DNA of 64,000 nucleotides, taken from assembly GCA_946965045.2 (NCBI GenBank), contig OX337236.1:2666001-2730000 (forward strand), read 5' to 3'. The notes below the pieces were generated by a model. The model ran no database searches. It was not told where the DNA came from and saw only the letters and a program-made list of their open reading frames with translations. Of the stretch, positions 8,062 through 45,697 are shown piece by piece (the first letter of the stretch is position 1; each line of letters starts with the position of its first letter). Source of the stretch: Epithemia pelagica (lineage: Eukaryota; Protista; Bacillariophyta). The translations under genes were made by a program, and so were the position numbers.

Positions 8062-9205
8062 TCGTCATCGGAGAGTGACTTTCGTACTGGAAGCGGGTTG
8101 GGTGTGTTGACTGGCAAGAAATAATATAGACAAAATAGTACGAACGGAAGAGAGAGGTTCGGGTCGGGGGCCAGCACAGATTTCAGACTATCAAGAAAGG
8201 ACATTATGGATTCCGGCCGTAAAAGCCCCTCCCCCCGAAGAGCAATGGAGGCTCCTCGTCGTCATGAAAAACAAGACGCTGGAACATGAGATAGTTCCAG
8301 CGAGATCAACCGCGCCTTTTACCCGTCCCGTCGGAAGAGGAGAGGCGGAAAAGGTTCCTGACTCCGGATTCTTGACTCCGGACTCCGTTTTTGGCTGTAA
8401 CGATTGAGGTGTCGATATCAAGCTGTAATGTGACCGCTCTATGATCTACCGTGATGCTCCCCGATCCCCGTTGTTCGGCCGCGGTCGTGAGCTTTGTATC
8501 ATTTAGAAAGTGGCGCACTCGAATAGAAAGTCCATTGTAAGGCGAACCGTAAGTCGCCACGTTGGGGTTGCTGTCGGTGAAAGCAAAGGAAAAGGGAACC
8601 TGAGGTATATGGATTTCCATTGCATAGGGAACGCTTCCTGTTCACTCTAGCCATTTTGATACTTTTATCCGCGTCATATTAAATCTTTATTGCAACCATG
8701 CTGATACCATGTTTCCTGTGTTCATGAGTTTCTCCTTTTGTTATGTACACCTTGTCAGGAATGCCCAATAAGAAAAAACAAGAGTTCGAAAAGACCATGA
8801 GCGAACGTTGTCATCGTGAATGCGTGTTGTCGAGAACAGTTTGCCATAGCATGCCATGTCTTACCGTACATGGCGCCGCGGCAAAGGCAGCGTCAGTTTC
8901 TTCCAGAAGTACATAGTATTCTATGTTGAGAGAAGTGGACAACACAACTTGTTTTATTATATTGTTAGTTTTTCTGAGAATGAAATGTTGGCATCTTTTA
9001 TGCGGTGTATTGGGTCGTTTCTGCTTGTGTAGTGGTTTGTGTTTATTTCGGTTTTCTTTTTGTTTTGAATTTTGATTTGGAATTGTGTTACGTTTCGTAT
9101 TTCGTTTCGTAGTTGTTGTTGGTTGTCATTGTTGTATAATGAGTCTTTTCTTTTCTTGTTGGGAGACGTTGTTGTTTATCATTTCAAGTTGTTGCGTTGG
9201 GTTCC

Positions 9206-37824: not shown

Positions 37825-39168
37825 TTAATTCCATGAAGCACAAGTGATGTCGTCGTCCTCAAATTCATCGTCAGTCACAGCGGGGATTTCGATTTCTTTA
37901 TCGAGCAGCTCCAGAAAACTTGTTTTGGGAGGATTTCTTTCCGCTGGGTCAAACAGCAGAATGTCCACGGAGGAGTCTGACTCCTCTTCACCCGAAGAAA
38001 CAGAGGATGAACAACCGGGTAGAAGCTTGCAATGATGGTATGAATCATCCCTTGTTGTACGGGTAATATAGGAAGACAAATTCACGCCTGCCTTGATCAA
38101 TGCTGTGTACGGATCCATGATGTACTTAGCCCCTTCTGTTCCCGTTCCGTATAGAAGTCCAAAATCGATGACGTCAAGTTTGAATTCATGACCTTGGCTG
38201 TCCTTAAGTTTTGGAACATCAACTTTCCGTTCTTCCCGCAATATATCTTTCATTGTTCTTAGCATATTCTTCCCACTCGTACCACCATCGGACTCATCAA
38301 AATTCTGGTAGTGGTTATCCCAGTTGGTAACCAGCGAATCCGCCATAGCTTTCATCACTTCCGCCAAAAGGGTCGTCGCATTCTGCACTTCCTCTGTGGA
38401 TGCTATGCTGATATGGTTATATGAAGCATCCTGGTGCATTTGAAGCTGCTTATAGGTTGGCGCATAGTCAGCCACCATGAGCATTTTGTACCCAGTCTGG
38501 TATTGCCACTTTGCCATATCTTCCATCGACGAGAAGATTGGGATAGCGCAAACTACCCCGTTATTTAGGGTGTCGTAGATATGATTGTGCTCACTAGCGA
38601 AATATAATTTGGAGGTTCTCATGCTGGCGAGCTTCTGGATGAGGAGCTTGCTATAAGACCTGTTTCTGTGTCCAGTGACAAGTTCGAACATTGGCCACCA
38701 GAACTTGTGGCATTGATGGTTGGCGGGAAACGTATGTGCTCGCGACACATTGCTTCTGTCAAGTGATTCACCGAGAATGGTTTTGGCATACTTTTTCTCG
38801 TGGTTCTTTCTTGAAGTTCTGTTAGATCCATCGATTGGTCCATCAACATCAGGCACTTTAATGGAAATTGAAGAGGTAGAGTCCGCATCCTTCATGAATA
38901 GACTCGATGTGTTGTTGGGATCAGCCAAAATGAATTCCAAACCCTCCTTACTGTCAAAAACATTGACTACTTCCTCACGCCAATACAACGAGCATCTATG
39001 ATCGCGGCGAAGTGTCAATGCATTACGATAGCATTCCGTGTATTCCTGAGCCTCAAATTCCCAGACATTTTCGATGGTATCCCAGTAACGGCCCGAATCC
39101 TTTTCTAAGGTATCCTCCTTAAACTTCAGGAGCTCCCCGTATGATGGCTTGGAACTATCCGCCCCCAT
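37825..39168 (-). CDS. 447-aa protein with an N-myristoylation-type start and a degenerate HNH-endonuclease-like core
   Basis: Starts MGADSS (MGxxxS). SRAHTFP...KLYFASEHNHIYD resembles the AHIxP...NxLxLxxxHHxxFD pattern of HNH_2-type nucleases. Single exon with an acidic tail. Confidence 0.55.
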   Translation of the reverse strand: MGADSSKPSYGELLKFKEDTLEKDSGRYWDTIENVWEFEAQEYTECYRNALTLRRDHRCSLYWREEVVNVFDSKEGLEFILADPNNTSSLFMKDADSTSSISIKVPDVDGPIDGSNRTSRKNHEKKYAKTILGESLDRSNVSRAHTFPANHQCHKFWWPMFELVTGHRNRSYSKLLIQKLASMRTSKLYFASEHNHIYDTLNNGVVCAIPIFSSMEDMAKWQYQTGYKMLMVADYAPTYKQLQMHQDASYNHISIASTEEVQNATTLLAEVMKAMADSLVTNWDNHYQNFDESDGGTSGKNMLRTMKDILREERKVDVPKLKDSQGHEFKLDVIDFGLLYGTGTEGAKYIMDPYTALIKAGVNLSSYITRTTRDDSYHHCKLLPGCSSSVSSGEEESDSSVDILLFDPAERNPPKTSFLELLDKEIEIPAVTDDEFEDDDITCASWN

Positions 39169-39281
39169 TGTTTCTCTGTTGTGAGTAAATATTACAGATT
39201 ACAGCAATCGTATTGCCGTCACGAACGCAGCGCAGTGTGAGTGTGATGAGGAACGCAAGCGCCCTATCCCCTATCGCTTAT

Positions 39282-39311
39282 GGGGTTGGGTCTGGGGTCT
39301 GGGGTCTGGGG
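39282..39311 (+). repeat. (GGGGTCT)n-like G-tract array, potential G-quadruplex
   Basis: ggggttgggtctggggtctggggtctgggg contains five G-runs of 3-4 nt with 2-3 nt loops. Confidence 0.65.
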
Positions 39312-39548
39312 TTCCAAGTTACAAGACCCCCCTCTCTCTCTAGCGGGGGTGGCTAAGAGGGTTTAATTTCGCGTTTCAACCAAATTACAACCTATAAAAC
39401 ACCCCCGCGCTAGGGTGTGAGTCTGGATAAAAAATTCGAATGGAGCATGTACGTAATAATGCTAGAACACTTTTAGACTGGCGGTTTTCGGTATTCCCAA
39501 TTCCCAACTCATGATTTCCTGTTGTTTTGTTGTTAATCGTAATGTTCG

Positions 39549-39573
39549 CACTTCCAGCCCCTCGTATCCCAAT
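39549..39573 (+). repeat. Left terminal inverted repeat
   Basis: CACTTCCAGCCCCTCGTATCCCAAT; matches the right TIR at 21/25. Confidence 0.8.
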
Positions 39574-40150
39574 CGAAACGCCAGCCTAGCCGACACCCTT
39601 CACTCGCATCTTCAGAAACCCAAAAATTCACTATAGGCATAAAGTGTGGAAAGAGGTTTTCATTAAGTATAAGACGAGACTTAGCGAAAATTTCGGCCTT
39701 CATTGGCTAACAACTTGGATGGCCAAAATAGACCCATTCCAACGGTCGGCATTTCCGACTAAGTATCCAAAACACTTCCATAATTGTTATAGAAAGATGC
39801 CCCAATGTTAGTAGGACACCAGCGTACGTGCATTTTGCCTCAAAGTGCAGCACCACCCAGCATCCATCACGGGCAATTTTATGAGAAAAGTCACCTACCC
39901 ACAGATACCCGATTCATCCCGCGCGCTTCACAGAACATTAATTTTATTCATGGCTGGTTTAACTTATCATATAGTCGCAAATCAATCGTCCTTAGATCGT
40001 CGATTCTAAAATGAGTTTGGGTAAGATTGTTGGGCCTCATGCCTCACAAAATAGAAAACGCGATGACCGATCGCTCTGAAGACTCTTACGTATCTCACTC
40101 CTTATGGCAATAGATTACTAACAGAATAGCTATTCCTGTTTATTTCGAAG

Positions 40151-43100
40151 ATGGACAATATGGACGAGTCAATGCTTTACTGCCAGGAGATCCCATCTTC
40201 CGTGAACCAAGAGAGCGAAGGCAACGAGACCATCCCTCTCTCGCCGAACCTACAAACCCGATCAAGACGCATATTGAACAAGAACCCCATCGTCACATCT
40301 ACTTCAGAGCGGATTCGAATTGCCAAGATCTGTGAAGACTTCGAAGACTGGGACAACAAGCCCTGCTCTGTCTTTGGAATGGAAAGATACAAGAAATACC
40401 GAGGCGGCTTTTTCTTCTGTGGCAACTGCAAAGATGCCGATGACTTTGACATCGCCAATGGAACTTCAGTGAATAGGAAGAATAAAAATGGGAACTACTT
40501 TTGTACGGCAAACCATGACAATATCCTACAACCAACCGACCGCATCAAGCAGATTTCTGTAGCAAAAAAACGACCAGTCAAGAACAAGAATCCGAGTGAC
40601 ATATCGGAGAACAAGGGCAAAAGGGGAAGAAAGAAGGTCAAGAAGAATCGAACCAGGTCAAGGTCAATGGAAGACATTGAAACTACCAAAGATTCAACCA
40701 ATCCTTCAAGAAAGCGGAAGAAGGCACGACACCATCATGAAGATGACAGACAAGGTTCTCCCACAGTGGAGACAATTTTCGACAACTCGGACATGGAAGA
40801 AGAAGACGAGGAAGCCGACCCGCCACAATCTGTCCCCGATGCACCTGTAGAAATGTTCCCAAATGCACCAAGTTCAACGCTGCCCACTCAAAGGGCTTCA
40901 ACTACCACCCACCATACCGATTCCGTACCACCGAGCGACCTTCAAGATCCCGAACCACCAGCATCTACACGTCCGACTCATGATAGCACGAGCGATCCAA
41001 CCTCCAACCCAACCCAAACCAATGCAAACGACGAACTCATTAGAGATCTCCAGAAGCAAATAGAAATCCTAGCCAAGGCTAACCAATCTGTTCGTCGAAG
41101 AGCAGAGAAACAGGAGAAGATCATCAAGTCTCACCTGAATGAGATTGCAACTCTACAAAGACGAGTTACCACTCTCGAGGCAAAGCATGGAAAGATACCA
41201 ACTACATGCTCGTCCGATGCCAATCTGCAAAAACTGCTTAATCACATCAAGGCAGTGATCGTAGAGGCCGTTCGTAACCACAATGGTAACAGCCACAGAG
41301 CCAAACGTTTCTTTGGTCAATTATCTCGCATGCTCTTGGACGCCCCGATCCACCATAAGCAACTCCAACAAATCCTTGTCCGTGTAGTTCAAAGGCATCT
41401 CCGTAAGACAACCTTTACGCCCTTCAACATATTGCGGGAGATGGACTTTGCCGGAGGGACACTCAACTACGGAGGAATTGAGATTCTCCGTCGTGTTGAA
41501 TGTGACGGTGAACCAAGAAAGCACACAATGATTCCCTCTACGTCCGCGATTCGACGTTGTGCGAATCTCATTGAAACCTTCGCCGATACTGTAGTTCCCT
41601 GTCGACCAATCAAAAGTAAAAAGAATGGGTCGGAAGGGTTCTATTTTCGTGCTGCAGACGTTTTCGTAGCAATCTTAAAGGCAGCAAACATGTTGGACGG
41701 CGAGGCCCGGGAACGGGCGATAATGTTCGCCCAAAGCTTGGACGGGGCAACACTTACCAAGTCATTGTCCCATGTTCTAGGTGGGTTGAAGTTCAATGAC
41801 CGCGGTGGTCCCTTGAAGACGCAATCTCGGGACATGGTGTTCCCATTGGTATGTGTCATTGGTAGGGAAACGAAGTCGCTCGTTAGGGGGTTATTCTCAC
41901 GAATGATTCGAGAGATCGAAGAGCAGCGAATAAAGTTCTACCTACATTGTACGCTATTGTGGCCTTGAAGATCGTCACCAATTGTGACATGTCCGTGGAC
42001 TGGAAGCTGTCCGGACGCGGTGGTGCTGCCAAGAACGCGACATACCCCTGTTCGAAGTGTTTTCTCCGTAGCGACGAGCTACACACAAAAACCGGAACAG
42101 CGTCAACTTGCAAATGGTGCATTCACCATAAGTACACAGAAATTGACGAAGATTGGCAATGTCGTCATTTCAACATGTACACAGAAGACCGCGTGGCCGA
42201 AATGAACGAACAAGTTCTTTCCTTTGAGAAAGATATGCCCAAAGTTTCCAAAAAGATAACAACTATTTGGGACCAATCATCGATTGCCATCAATCGGCAT
42301 GTAGATCCGCGAGTACCTCCAGAGCCCTTCCAGTTGAAGGAACTGGATTCGATCCACTTCGACTCTCGGGGGAAGGACAGGAAGAGCTGTCAGCTATACT
42401 CGTCCCACCTTAACAACGATTTGCAACTACGAGATCTCCCAATCCATGGATCATTGCAGGATAGACAGCGGCGATTGAAAAAACAACTAATTTCGGAGTG
42501 GGCATACGTCGATGCAAGCACCACGATCAAGAAGCATGGAGAGGCATCTTTCACGTCCGCCATGGTTATGGTCATGGAGACGATTCCATGTGTGCTACAC
42601 ATGGAAATGCGCCTGGGCATTAAGATTATTTCGATGCTATTTAAGACAGGACTGACCAACGCAAAGAACAAGCTGCTGACATGGATCGACAAGGATGATC
42701 AGAAGTCAGTGGACAAGACGTGTCGATCGTTCATTGCGGGTATTGAAGACTGTTTGAATACGAAGATTCTTGGAACCGAGTCCATGCCAGCCCAGAAATA
42801 CGTCCCATTGGACAAGAAAACCCATCTTATTGGTGAAATCAAACTGAACAACGGTAAGGTACGGAAAATCTTCCCCAAACTGGAACTGCTTATCGACCTG
42901 TGCATTGCAAAGGACCTAGAGAAAGAACAATGGGCCATGGCGATGGGACATTTCAGAGAGAGCATGAAGATCATTCTAAAGAAGGAAGATCTCACGAATC
43001 AAGAGATTTTCACGTACCAACAACATGCCGATATGTTTTTCAAGTATTGGCTGGCTTTATACGGGGAAGAAGGAATAACAAACTACGTACACTTGGTGGG

Positions 43101-43581
43101 TAGTGGACATATTGGGGAATACCTGTTCCATTGGAAAAGCCTTTATGTCCATTCCCAGCAAGGATGGGAGGCATTTAACGCCCTCTTCAAGTCCTTTTAC
43201 TTCTCCCGCACTCAGAGAGGCGGGGCGACAAACCGTGGACTCGGAGATCGATCGCGTTTGAAGCCTGTTGCTAAGTGGCTTCAACGCAGGTTAGTGTTTC
43301 TAATGGGCCACAGTATTGAATCCATCAAGGAACATTTGTCTTCGAGAACAGCCGAGGACAAACGGAAGGACCGGCAGTGGGTAAAAAATAGTGGAGGGTC
43401 CGTAGAGTTTGGCCAGTTGATACGAAGCGACTCAGAGTCCTCTTCTGACAGTGACGCCAGTACGCGAGTGGAGGATGATTGGGAAATTGGAACCCAAGAG
43501 CTTTATCAAGAATGGGACGATGGTAAAGATCAGGTGGAGGTAGAGTCTAGTGAAGAGTCAAATGACGAGGATTGGTGGTAG
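40151..43581 (+). CDS. RAG1/Transib-like DDE transposase (about 1140 aa), split by a single frameshift near 41920
   Basis: ORFs 40151-41968 and 41947-43581 overlap in adjacent frames; restored junction MIREIEE/AANKVLPTLY. Motifs in RAG1 order: SLDG (D, 41741), NCDM (D, 41986), YPCSKC, VLHME (H, 42598), ITNYVHLVGSGH (H 43090, H 43108), QGWEAFN (E, 43168). These parallel RAG1 D600, D708, C727/C730, H795, TNYFHKTLAH (H937/H942) and EGNESGN (E962). Confidence 0.8.
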
Positions 43582-43605
43582 GGGGTAGATACATTCTAAT
43601 TTAGA

Positions 43606-45396
43606 TTAAGAGTAAGCCTTCAATGCCTCAGCAATCTCATCCGTATGCTGAATAATGATGTGTTTTTGTTCTGTACCGGGTTTCTTCTTGTTATAATCTG
43701 GACCAGCTGCGACACGACAAGCGTAGGTTGGGATATCGGACGGCATAATCACGTCCACGTACTTCAGCTCGTCGTCGTCAATCTTGGAATTATGAGCGGG
43801 GTCCTTGTATGTTGTGAGGAACTCAGCTGCAAGAGTATCAAGAATGATCCATCGTTTCTTGCAGCAATCGGGCCAAAACAATGCAACAATCTCGTAGACA
43901 TTCGAATTCATGAAGAACTGGTCTCCTTGGTACACATCGTGGTCCTCGAAACGAAAGAAGACAGTCGAGTTGTGGGTGTGTAGAGACAGGTTGTCATCTT
44001 CTGCATTATTGTCTTCTCCATTGTTGTCCTCTTCAGACGAAGTCATCTGAAGGATCTTGTTGAAGGTATCTGGACTGCCTTGCATTCCATTCCCTTGGCG
44101 ACTGTCTTGAATCGATCCGTCGGTGCTTTCGGACTCATCAGTGTCCGAGTCAACATCGTCGTTTGCATATGGAGTGCAAGTCAGAAGGGACTTGAGATGT
44201 TCCGTTGGAGGTGCATTGATAATCGTCCCATCTTTCTTGGAGTCGTAATGGTAGCGCTCAAAAGAGACTGTCACTTTGACAGCAAATGGTGAAAAGGATA
44301 AATCAACACGTTGCTTGAGAGTACGGCGCTGCAACTTGTTGGGGGGTCCATCTTGAGGCTCACCACCTTTTACGACAGTAAGGAAGTGACCGCGTTTCAA
44401 AGGTCTACCGGCTTTCCCATCACCAAGGGTGGGTCGGGCTTCACTTGACCCATATACGGCTCCAATCCCAAGCAGCGATCGCAAAATATCGATGTCCTGC
44501 CAAGATTCGAAACGGATCAGACCACTTTGGAAGGTCATTTTGATCTTACGACGCGTGAGAGAACGATCAACATCAAGGTAAGATTCAGAAGTCGAAAATG
44601 TATGACAAGACAAAGACTCAATACCGGAATTGGCAACCATATGGATATAATTGAAGGTTTCCAGCGGAATTGTTCCGAGTGTGATGGAATCATAGTCCAA
44701 GTGTTCGTTCTGTCCACTGCGTTTGTTGAGTATCTTCATTATACCTTTTCGTAGCTGGAATAGGCCTGACCATACATTACGATGGTAACAACGGGGAGGG
44801 GCCACCAGATTTGGAAGTAGGGCTTTGTAGTTCTCCTTTTCCGTAGGGAAACAAACCACTTCGCCTTCATGGAGCTTAACGAGACGGAGTTTGCCGTTGA
44901 CTCGGGTTTGTTTGAAGCGAAGGAGGAAGACATTCTTTAGGCCGTCGCCCCAGCGATTCTTGGGGTTCGACAGGTCACTGGGCATGAAAACAAACGCGGG
45001 AAACATAATCTTGAAGTCCTTGAAACGAGGGTCCGGGCGAGTTAAAACATCGGATGACTGGTACAGCTCAATGATGTTTGAACCGCATCCATGCAGCACA
45101 GGTTCTTGCGAGTGACTAGGAACAGAAGGGTGGCATTTCAAGTTTTTCTTGGGGAAGAGTGGGAAGAATAGACGAATAGCAATGTCACCATTGGGGATCT
45201 TTTGGATGCGACCAATTGTGGTGGTGTTGCGGTCTTGGTTGGGAAGCTTCAGGTGAACGAACGTTCCCATACGGAACGTATCGTCGATTGACGGGATGTA
45301 AATTGGTGCGGGTACCATTCTGGAGTGGATATCGAAAGGTACTTGCTTTTTGTATGATGGAATGGGATCCTTCTGACAACAAGTCGTTGTGTTCAT
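43606..45396 (-). CDS. Transposon accessory protein of unknown function (about 596 aa from MNTTTCC; ORF extends to 45519)
   Basis: Intact ORF wholly inside the TIRs and convergent with the transposase. The N-terminal part (MGTFVHLK...IELYQSSDV...PAFVF) is loosely reminiscent of a BAH-like fold. No kelch or PHD pattern of RAG2 was seen. Confidence 0.75.
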   Translation of the reverse strand: MNTTTCCQKDPIPSYKKQVPFDIHSRMVPAPIYIPSIDDTFRMGTFVHLKLPNQDRNTTTIGRIQKIPNGDIAIRLFFPLFPKKNLKCHPSVPSHSQEPVLHGCGSNIIELYQSSDVLTRPDPRFKDFKIMFPAFVFMPSDLSNPKNRWGDGLKNVFLLRFKQTRVNGKLRLVKLHEGEVVCFPTEKENYKALLPNLVAPPRCYHRNVWSGLFQLRKGIMKILNKRSGQNEHLDYDSITLGTIPLETFNYIHMVANSGIESLSCHTFSTSESYLDVDRSLTRRKIKMTFQSGLIRFESWQDIDILRSLLGIGAVYGSSEARPTLGDGKAGRPLKRGHFLTVVKGGEPQDGPPNKLQRRTLKQRVDLSFSPFAVKVTVSFERYHYDSKKDGTIINAPPTEHLKSLLTCTPYANDDVDSDTDESESTDGSIQDSRQGNGMQGSPDTFNKILQMTSSEEDNNGEDNNAEDDNLSLHTHNSTVFFRFEDHDVYQGDQFFMNSNVYEIVALFWPDCCKKRWIILDTLAAEFLTTYKDPAHNSKIDDDELKYVDVIMPSDIPTYACRVAAGPDYNKKKPGTEQKHIIIQHTDEIAEALKAYS

Positions 45397-45644
45397 TTGT
45401 GGTTCTTGTGTGGATCTGTTTCTCCATTGGCATGCAATCGTTACGGGATGGAGGGTCCGAGTTGGTAAGTACCGAGTACGAAAATGTGAGCGAATACGAC
45501 GATTCTTTGAGAAAAACAATTAAATGGGTAAGAAAAATAGATTGTTTACGTTTAATGTAGTTTTGAAGAGCATGCCAGGTCGGAGGTGCGCGAGGCAGGT
45601 TTTTGGTGGACTGGCCGGCGATTTTGGCTCATCCGTTCTGCAAA

Positions 45645-45669
45645 ATTGGGATATGAGGGGCTCGTTGTG
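45645..45669 (-). repeat. Right terminal inverted repeat
   Basis: ATTGGGATATGAGGGGCTCGTTGTG on the + strand; the reverse complement begins CAC. Confidence 0.8.
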
Positions 45670-45697
45670 GTATTCCCATGGGAGTTGTCATCCTGAC

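Follow-up and report, generated by a model that had tools for sequence, protein, structure and literature searches.

A polymorphic two-gene transposon of the diatom Epithemia pelagica, with a transposase of predicted RAG1 fold and a partner protein of predicted BAH fold

The window analysed here is a 64,000-nucleotide stretch of the genome of the diatom Epithemia pelagica (contig OX337236.1, positions 2,666,001 to 2,730,000, assembly GCA_946965045.2), in which an earlier note, made from the sequence, had marked positions 39549-45669 as a transposon. This 6121-bp element probably belongs to a DNA transposon family of the diatom that has two genes, is autonomous in type and moves by cut and paste, encoding a DDE enzyme of RAG1 fold and a partner of BAH fold; the copy in the window is inactivated by one frameshift. 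Its first gene would encode a DDE transposase of about 1150 amino acids, with a core of about 650 amino acids for which modelling points to the RAG1/Transib architecture, that is, an RNase H fold carrying D..D..E and a Cys2/His2 site built from TxPCxxC and NYxHxxxxxH. We read the family as a deep and apparently undescribed sister of Transib/ProtoRAG. Positions are those of the window unless another locus is named.

The element is bounded by 25-nt terminal inverted repeats (TIRs), already noted earlier, and an inverted-repeat computation confirmed that they are complementary at 21/25 positions (84%) and that both arms begin with CAC. Each arm occurs once in the window, where the chance expectation is 0. 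Searching at the protein level turned up a gene product, P0001, that is 99% identical and is encoded on an ENA contig of 1.73 Mb; this led to a second copy in the same assembly, L001:8293-14416 (ENA ERZ21939226 ctg1356l), which is 99.2% identical over 6124 nt. The alignment of the two copies spans exactly 39549 to 45669 (CAC...GTG) and the flanks are unrelated. The ends of the element are therefore independently confirmed, since the similarity stops at the same positions amid unrelated flanks.

Evidence for an empty site came from three public sequencing runs of this organism (X1, X2 and X3, from two samples), whose Logan contigs were aligned to positions 39100-45099; the empty site was read from the loose ends of the contigs. 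In all three runs a loose end at 39548 runs on as TATTCCCATGGGAGTTG, which is the right flank of the window from 45671. The empty-allele contigs read AATGTTCG followed directly by TATTCCCATGG across the insertion point, with a single G there, and a loose end at 39549 in the run contigs carries the left flank of L001. It is clear that the insertion at 39549-45669 is polymorphic. Word depth was 66-69 in the contig of the occupied junction and 115-121 in the flank; given this and the presence of the empty allele, the insertion is probably hemizygous and looks recent. The features expected of a DDE cut-and-paste element were all found, namely a D/D/E triad, TIRs, copies at different sites and insertion polymorphism, and on this reading the element is a real, mobile transposon whose mobility is recent. 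The rows for the ends and their adjoining regions are as follows.

39548, no strand: left copy (G) of the 1-bp target-site duplication; only one G in the empty-site contigs, the base being repeated at 45670
39549-39573, plus strand: left TIR, CACTTCCAGCCCCTCGTATCCCAAT; similarity to L001 begins exactly at 39549, and the L001 flank appears there as a loose end
39574-40150, plus strand: upstream non-coding region of the transposase gene, presumed promoter; no long open reading frame (ORF)
45319-45644, minus strand: upstream non-coding region of the partner gene, presumed promoter; the ORF reaches a TTG at 45519, its homologues do not
45645-45669, minus strand: right TIR, CACAACGAGCCCCTCATATCCCAAT in minus-strand reading; from repeat detection and the limit of the L001 alignment
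45670, no strand: right copy (G) of the target-site duplication; from the empty site and flank comparison

The fold of the transposase was tested on residues 300-1060 of P0050, an intact relative that is 45-53% identical to the window's protein, with template-free AlphaFold2, and the resulting model has a predicted local distance difference test score (pLDDT) of 92.7 and a predicted template-modelling score (pTM) of 0.89. Foldseek against the PDB, a check proposed beforehand, returned RAG1, HzTransib or BbRAGL as every one of its first 49 matches (E 7e-11 to 6e-3, 660-800 columns), and the next match was ISCth4 at E 0.19. Similarly, VIA-align gave Z-scores of 17.8 for RAG1 (460-1005), 17.7 for HzTransib (21-472) and 16.3 for BbRAGL, the structural match covering about 450 residues, as compared with 9.4 for the P element, 6.8 for ISCth4 and 5.6 for Hermes. 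Language-model features (Atlas) place the core beside the RAG1_RNase_H/ZnC2/ZnH2 clusters with a score of 0.91, less strongly for the piece from the window itself. The earlier assignment to a RAG1-type transposase is thus supported by the fold, well above every other transposase, and the language-model features agree with it.

The motifs D, D, CxxC, LH, TNYxH..H and E, which had been listed as standing in the same order as in RAG1, are real and are conserved across 73 family members, where they take the form S[IL]DGA, TNCDMSxxWK..GGAAK..TxPCxxC, PCxLHMExR, GITNYxHMxGSGH and SQQGWEAxN. When these 73 sequences are aligned, the D in S[IL]DGA and in NCDMS, both Cys in TxPCxxC, PCxLH, both His in NYxHxxxxxH, the E in QQGWEA and one more Cys/His cluster prove invariant or nearly so; in the numbering of P0050:300-1060 the near-invariant acidic residues are D185, D266 and E658. 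The window copy has kept every one of the conserved catalytic and zinc residues. A motif of the form [ST]xxCxxC is described by Kapitonov and Jurka as conserved between zinc finger B of RAG1 and Transib (PMC1131882). A word-indexed search gave 27 homologues of the transposase, and a profile search of 1.84 billion representatives gave 3828 at E <= 1e-3 and 595 at E <= 1e-30, the 3828 being representative clusters at 50% identity. No Pfam family was found in any of the transposase family members scanned (20, and 9 distant ones).

A single transposase ORF of about 1140 amino acids had been proposed, although the mention of a 'repaired' transposase implies that a break had been noticed; the gene in the window lies in two ORFs in different frames, at 40151-41968 (+, 605 amino acids) and 41947-43581 (+, 544 amino acids, other frame). 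The break is a deletion of one nucleotide, across which both L001 and P0001 read through as IEEAANKVLPT. The X2 contig has an additional A after 41921; those of X1 and X3 lack it, as does the window. Between the window and L001 there are 44 substitutions and three 1-nt indels, and L001 carries two other 1-nt insertions and a premature stop; both transposase genes are therefore broken, each differently. At window position 42724 the X1 and X3 contigs read T in place of C, and P0001 terminates immediately ahead of the codon concerned. As a side observation on these contigs, the stop in L001 may most simply be this C>T, which would turn CGA into TGA at a CpG and would fit methylation-driven decay of the element. 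Both pieces align collinearly with intact relatives of 1094-1296 amino acids, and the N-terminal CxnCxxCxnCxxxH is part of this match. One such relative is P0050 (1094 amino acids), which comes from element L004 of the same assembly and is 53% and 45% identical to the two pieces; intact members occur in the same genome in elements L003, L004, L008 and L009. Since the transposases of the window and L001 are both broken and their partner genes intact, the polymorphic insertion either predates the frameshift or was mobilised in trans. The transposase gene comprises:

40151-41921, plus strand: N-terminal piece up to the frameshift; collinear with intact P0050
40364-40519, plus strand: zinc-finger-like CxnCxxCxnCxxxH motif, in the N-terminal piece
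within the N-terminal piece, listed between the zinc-finger-like motif and the coiled coil: low-complexity linker
41033-41191, plus strand: coiled coil, before the RAG1-like core
41741-41743, plus strand: first catalytic Asp, in SLDGA; the RAG1-like core starts in the N-terminal piece
41921/41922, plus strand: 1-nt deletion (frameshift); the sister copy reads GAAGA[A]GCAGCG, and a MAFFT alignment of the two copies agrees
41923-43581, plus strand: C-terminal piece, with acidic tail; stop TAG at 43579-43581
41986-41988, plus strand: second catalytic Asp, in the C-terminal piece
42049 and 42058, plus strand: Cys of TxPCxxC, in the C-terminal piece
42598, plus strand: His of PCVLHME, in the C-terminal piece
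43090 and 43108, plus strand: His of ITNYVHLVGSGH, in the C-terminal piece
43168-43170, plus strand: catalytic Glu in QQGWEA, in the C-terminal piece

The second gene runs towards the first on the opposite strand, and the distance of 24 bp given previously between the two stop codons is exact. Its ORF is intact as described, with a length given earlier as about 600 amino acids; the mechanical ORF at 43606-45519 (-) has 637 amino acids from a TTG, and a start where the homologues have theirs, at the ATG at 45318, leaves 570. The partners of the window and L001 are both intact and differ by 10 nucleotides and 5 amino acids. Homologues recognisable at the sequence level number 17, all on large ENA contigs. 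The AlphaFold2 model of the partner (pLDDT 75.8, pTM 0.62) has beta domains at both termini and between them an alpha/beta domain in the centre, followed by an acidic linker that is disordered. The rows for the spacer and the partner gene are as follows.

43582-43605, no strand: 24-bp spacer between the convergent stop codons
43606-45318, minus strand: partner gene, 570 amino acids; intact here and in L001
43609-43986, minus strand: C-terminal beta-rich SH3/Tudor-like domain, residues about 445-570; from weak structural likeness
residues 387-442, minus strand: acidic disordered linker; from the model
44164-44787, minus strand: central conserved domain, residues about 178-385; family-specific
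44839-45318, minus strand: BAH-fold domain, residues 1-160; from structural searches

Residues 1-160 of the partner are predicted to have a BAH beta-barrel fold. BAH came first for these residues in Foldseek against the PDB (E 4e-5, probability 1.0) and first for the partner in VIA-align (Z 8.8), with agreement from the AFDB clusters; in a scan of 48,161 PDB representatives made independently of Foldseek the top 19 were all BAH, with Z up to 8.6. The C-terminal domain has a weak likeness to SH3-like barrels (KOW, Tudor, PWWP; Z 3.5-4.5), and every weak Atlas lead for the partner is to a chromatin reader (BAH, Agenet, PWWP, Tudor, SAWADEE or MBT). A shape search of the ESM Atlas with the partner gave only TM < 0.3, and the central domain (178-385) had no structural match in VIA-align, the AFDB clusters or the PDB-representative scan. 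Known BAH readers (ORC1, PBRM1, EBS/SHL, BAHCC1, DNMT1/MET1/DIM2, Sir3) superpose on residues 1-160 with Z 7-8.8 over about 120-130 residues, whereas the identity to them is only 10-20% and a Pfam BAH match is lacking; the partner, unlike them, is encoded by a transposon and its remainder is family-specific. The model contains neither a propeller nor a PHD finger and RAG2 is not among its structural matches. The partner had been called a non-RAG2 protein, and this BAH-fold domain with no propeller or PHD finger beside it bears that out.

A search for further copies, which had been suggested as a check of the tail-to-tail two-gene unit, found the unit in 11/11 loci examined, together with co-divergence and purifying selection. 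The 11 loci are the window and L001-L010, of which at least 8 are independent. The window, L001, L002, L003, L004, L008, L009 and L010 belong to the same assembly; L005 (NCBI GCA_025491035.1), L006 (a JGI metagenome contig) and L007 (an ENA metagenome contig) lie elsewhere, and L005 and L006 have identical flanks and so are one element sampled twice. Partner matches among the loci reach E values down to 1e-13 in BLASTP, and hhalign aligns the ORFs that follow the transposase in L005 and L007 to the profile of the partner with a probability of 97.6-97.8% (E ~1e-12). Identity to the window falls in parallel for the two genes, at 58/50, 48/40, 44/36, 43/39, 37/22 and 33/24% for transposase/partner. 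For the pair L008 and L009 the ratio of non-synonymous to synonymous substitution (dN/dS) comes to 0.10 in the transposase gene and 0.18 in the partner gene, and for L008 and L010 to 0.23 in the partner gene; both genes are under purifying selection. The elements measured are 5.5-6.5 kb in size, with a transposase of 1094-1296 amino acids and the second gene. No host gene standing on its own turned up among the 17 homologues of the partner; those that were looked up all adjoin a transposase.

Relative to the empty allele, the insertion added the element and one G. The base flanking the element on the left equals that on the right in 5/5 elements with clear ends (G/G, T/T, C/C, T/T, A/A), and in a sixth the bases are T/T after a 3-nt adjustment of the end; the chance of such identity is about 0.001-0.004 (0.1-0.4%). 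The 5-mers flanking the six elements differ while the single adjacent bases agree. As these bases are direct repeats and not complementary bases, we read them as a 1-bp target-site duplication (TSD) made by the element family. A 5-bp TSD was looked for at the ends of the examined elements and none was found. A TSD of 8-10 bp with filler was also considered, because the 9-mer GTATTCCCA at 45670-45678 occurs again at 39491-39499, 49 nt before the left end; it was rejected for the window, since the empty allele already holds those 49 nt and shows a duplication of one nucleotide only. Both copies of GTATTCCCA pre-existed in the empty target, the left one being in the empty-allele contig, and the pair was therefore not made by the insertion.

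The ends of five subfamilies have GAGC in common near positions 7-10, and several also have TATCCCA near 17-24. All that is seen at the ends is one contiguous conserved block, GAGCCCCTC[G/A]TATCCCAAT, confirming the earlier failure to see a nonamer like that of a recombination signal sequence at 12/23 spacing. The description of the ends as CAC-initiated holds for the window, L001, L003 and L005, among which the terminal heptamers are CACTTCC, CACAACG and CACTACG; it does not hold for L002 and L004, which begin with CAA (CAATAGG). For L003, CACGGCTCGC was tried as the TIR and rejected, and a motif search gave the true ends. Several local observations were made at the ends of the L008-L010 subfamily. 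In L009 a 10-nt direct repeat, CATTTCCACT, abuts the left TIR (L009:8647-8656) and recurs 29 nt outside the right TIR, and the outer 13-20 nt beyond the right TIR of L009 are common to L010. The left junction of L010, comprising flank and the initial 57 nt of the element, occurs a second time 261 bp upstream (8394-8450 and 8655-8711), a local tandem duplication of the transposon end. L008 alone has an extra inverted pair outside the conserved TIRs, with ATAGCCCGTA about 30 nt left of the left TIR and TACGGGCTAT 4 nt right of the right TIR.

ProtoRAG elements carry convergent RAG1-like and RAG2-like genes between TIRs and make a 5-bp TSD. The ProtoRAG/RAGL elements of amphioxus and other invertebrates (BbRAGL, PDB 6b40) share with the diatom element the tail-to-tail gene pair between short TIRs and the RAG1 fold of gene 1 (Z 16.3 to BbRAGL), whereas gene 2 here is not RAG2-like, having a predicted BAH fold and an SH3/Tudor-like C-terminus in place of a Kelch propeller or PHD; the TSD is 1 bp and not 5 bp, and the host is a stramenopile. 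The label of ProtoRAG-like transposon can thus be kept for the gene layout and the RAG1 fold, and has to be given up for the TSD and the partner. Vertebrate RAG1-RAG2 has the same catalytic core fold (Foldseek E 7e-11, Z 17.8 over RAG1 460-1005) and likewise pairs the enzyme with a protein bearing a domain of histone-reader type. However, it is a domesticated pair of host genes and not a mobile element, its reader is a PHD and not a BAH domain, RAG2 is unrelated to the partner described here, and asymmetric signals of the 12/23 type are not seen in the diatom family. The PHD finger of RAG2 reads H3K4me3, and RAG2 stimulates transposition by Transib (PMC4840297). Fungal DNA transposons that encode a TET/JBP dioxygenase have a DDE transposase next to a second gene related to chromatin or the epigenome, as here; the transposase superfamily and the accessory protein both differ, and in the diatom family the linkage is universal in the loci examined (PMC12730594).

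How far the element could simply be an ordinary Transib member or a ProtoRAG relative living in a diatom, already catalogued for instance in Repbase, can be judged by comparison with Transib, which has a single transposase of about 700 amino acids, a 5-bp TSD and TIRs of CACAATG type and was reported from animals and one rust fungus (Kapitonov and Jurka 2005, PMC1131882). Transib (e.g. HzTransib of Helicoverpa zea) is likewise a cut-and-paste element with TIRs, has the same multi-domain core fold (Z 17.7, residues 21-472), the same motif order D..D..[ST]xxCxxC..NYxH..H..E and ends that start with CA(C); moreover, a family with 3828 representatives is hardly rare and could have been noticed already. 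Against this, the TSD is 1 bp where 5 bp is diagnostic of Transib (PMC1131882), the transposase has 1100-1300 amino acids with an N-terminal zinc-finger-like motif and coiled coil, the element is 5.5-6.5 kb with a second conserved gene where Transib is a single gene in 3-4 kb, and neither the CACAATG heptamer nor a spaced A-rich nonamer is present in the ends examined. The host is a diatom and not an animal or fungus, and neither the Pfam RAG1 models nor PDB sequence profiles match the diatom transposase, so that homology to the RAG1 core is found by fold and not by sequence hidden Markov model (HMM). The literature searched, which did not cover Repbase, yielded no link between Transib and diatoms or BAH and no description connecting Transib or RAG1-like transposases with diatoms or a BAH partner. 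An ordinary or catalogued Transib is accordingly an unlikely account. Very improbable is an account in which the likeness to RAG1 arose by convergence or was produced by the structure prediction itself, the protein being a member of some unrelated DDE superfamily. It would fit the lack of sequence-level significance to RAG1 or Transib and the fact that the model is of a relative and not of the window's own broken protein, but the match takes in several domains and about 450 residues, with Z 17-18 as compared with at most 9.4; the conserved residues D, D, CxxC, HxxxxxH and E keep their order, the prediction was template-free and an independent feature search also gives the RAG1 families.

The single duplicated base has an alternative source, in which RAG-type cleavage frees a blunt fragment that host end joining ligates into a chromosomal break, leaving an apparent TSD of 0-1 bp. 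RAG1-type cleavage does leave blunt signal ends, a single base is all that is shared at the empty site, and to our knowledge no eukaryotic DDE superfamily has a 1-bp TSD; the phrase itself was not found in the literature searched. Yet random breaks would usually leave deletions or filler, of which the empty site has none, and the identity of the flank base in all five clear-ended elements, and in the adjusted sixth, is what would be expected of a fixed 1-nt stagger, so end joining seems unlikely. The main rival concerns the partner, which could be cargo of the element acting on the host, for example by BAH/Tudor-like interference with chromatin silencing, and not a cofactor of transposition. 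This is possible, though we favour it less than a role in transposition: its fold suggests only a chromatin reader, both copies with a broken transposase retain an intact partner ORF, and DNA transposons with epigenetic-modifier genes are known, such as the fungal TET/JBP elements (PMC12730594). On the other hand, the strict linkage, the fixed orientation and spacing down to 29-33% transposase identity and the parallel divergence fit a subunit at least as well as cargo, and a free-standing host homologue of the partner is absent among its 17 sequence-level homologues.

Several points weigh against reading the element as a RAG1-fold transposon with a BAH-fold partner and a 1-bp TSD. Pfam found no RAG1 match in the window pieces, 20 family members or 9 distant members, and phmmer and hmmsearch against PDB sequences, with a single sequence and with 20- and 73-sequence profiles, found no RAG1 chain. 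The kinship with RAG1 is suggested by the predicted structure of a relative that is 45-53% identical, by motifs and by language-model features; as even the 73-sequence HMM picks up no PDB chain of RAG1, this relationship is deep. Hairpin chemistry is suggested by the fold only. The 1-bp TSD rests on one empty site and on the identity of flank bases in five or six elements, and the outer ends of the L008-L010 subfamily are ambiguous, with no clear fit to it. For the partner, there is no match to Pfam BAH (PF01426) and none to any Pfam family at E up to 1; the structural match to BAH is middling (Z about 8.6-8.8, TM about 0.4 by target), and a predicted BAH fold by itself would not demonstrate histone binding.

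If the RAG1-fold reading is followed through, the transposase would bind the 25-nt ends through the conserved boxes GAGC and TATCCCA and may cleave at the CA/CAC boundary by the nick-and-hairpin chemistry of RAG1/Transib, as its fold suggests; integration would then take place with a stagger of 1 nt instead of 5 nt. The BAH protein could be an accessory subunit, encoded by the element, that couples, tethers or licenses the transposase to nucleosomes or to a histone mark. It would in that case resemble RAG2, a stimulator of RAG1 and reader of H3K4me3 (PMC4840297), in function but not by homology. From the models, a RAG1-type enzyme appears to have gained a partner of chromatin-reader type independently of RAG2; its recruitment as a cofactor, with a role in chromatin targeting, may be envisaged. 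A broader view, to which we would give somewhat less than an even chance, is that the family forms a separate, superfamily-level RAG1-fold lineage, widespread in diatoms and other marine protists, with an obligate BAH/Tudor-like reader subunit and 1-nt-stagger target capture, a histone-reading cofactor having been recruited twice independently (the PHD of RAG2, and BAH here).

The surroundings of the insertion were also inspected. The element sits in the presumed upstream region of a minus-strand ORF of 447 amino acids (37825-39168), which starts 380 bp left of the insertion point. At 39343-39408, 140 bp to the left of the point of insertion, is a palindrome with 27-nt arms that are 78% complementary and a 12-nt loop; over it the contig word depth rises to 350-750 as against about 130 nearby, with several different loose ends at 39340 and 39371, and it is a multi-copy hairpin repeat resembling a miniature inverted-repeat transposable element. 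The X2 and X3 contigs have a 10-nt insertion, TGTGACTGTG, after 39213 that is absent from the window, an allelic or strain indel of the flank. Three elements have retroelement genes of Copia type (RVT_2) as neighbours at a distance of a few kb at most (L001:15598-19482, L004:1-112 and L010:130-4194). The genomic setting varies, some copies being in DNA rich in transposable elements (TEs) and those of L003, L008 and L009 among ordinary genes.

With 3828 clusters at 50% identity and no Pfam family in the members scanned, the family is probably unclassified in protist genomes, and its description fills a gap in TE annotation. The 1-bp TSD, if general, would widen the known range of target-capture geometry among DDE enzymes and provide a diagnostic by which the family could be annotated. 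The dependence of RAG1 on RAG2 and how it arose pose an open question in the origin of V(D)J recombination, for which the only natural comparators have so far been Transib, with no partner, and ProtoRAG/RAGL, with a RAG2-like one. The diatom family would add a third, independent case, in which a transposase of RAG1 fold is stably coupled to an unrelated protein of chromatin-reader type, and because diatoms can be transformed, the question of why this class of enzyme recruits a chromatin-reading partner becomes testable.

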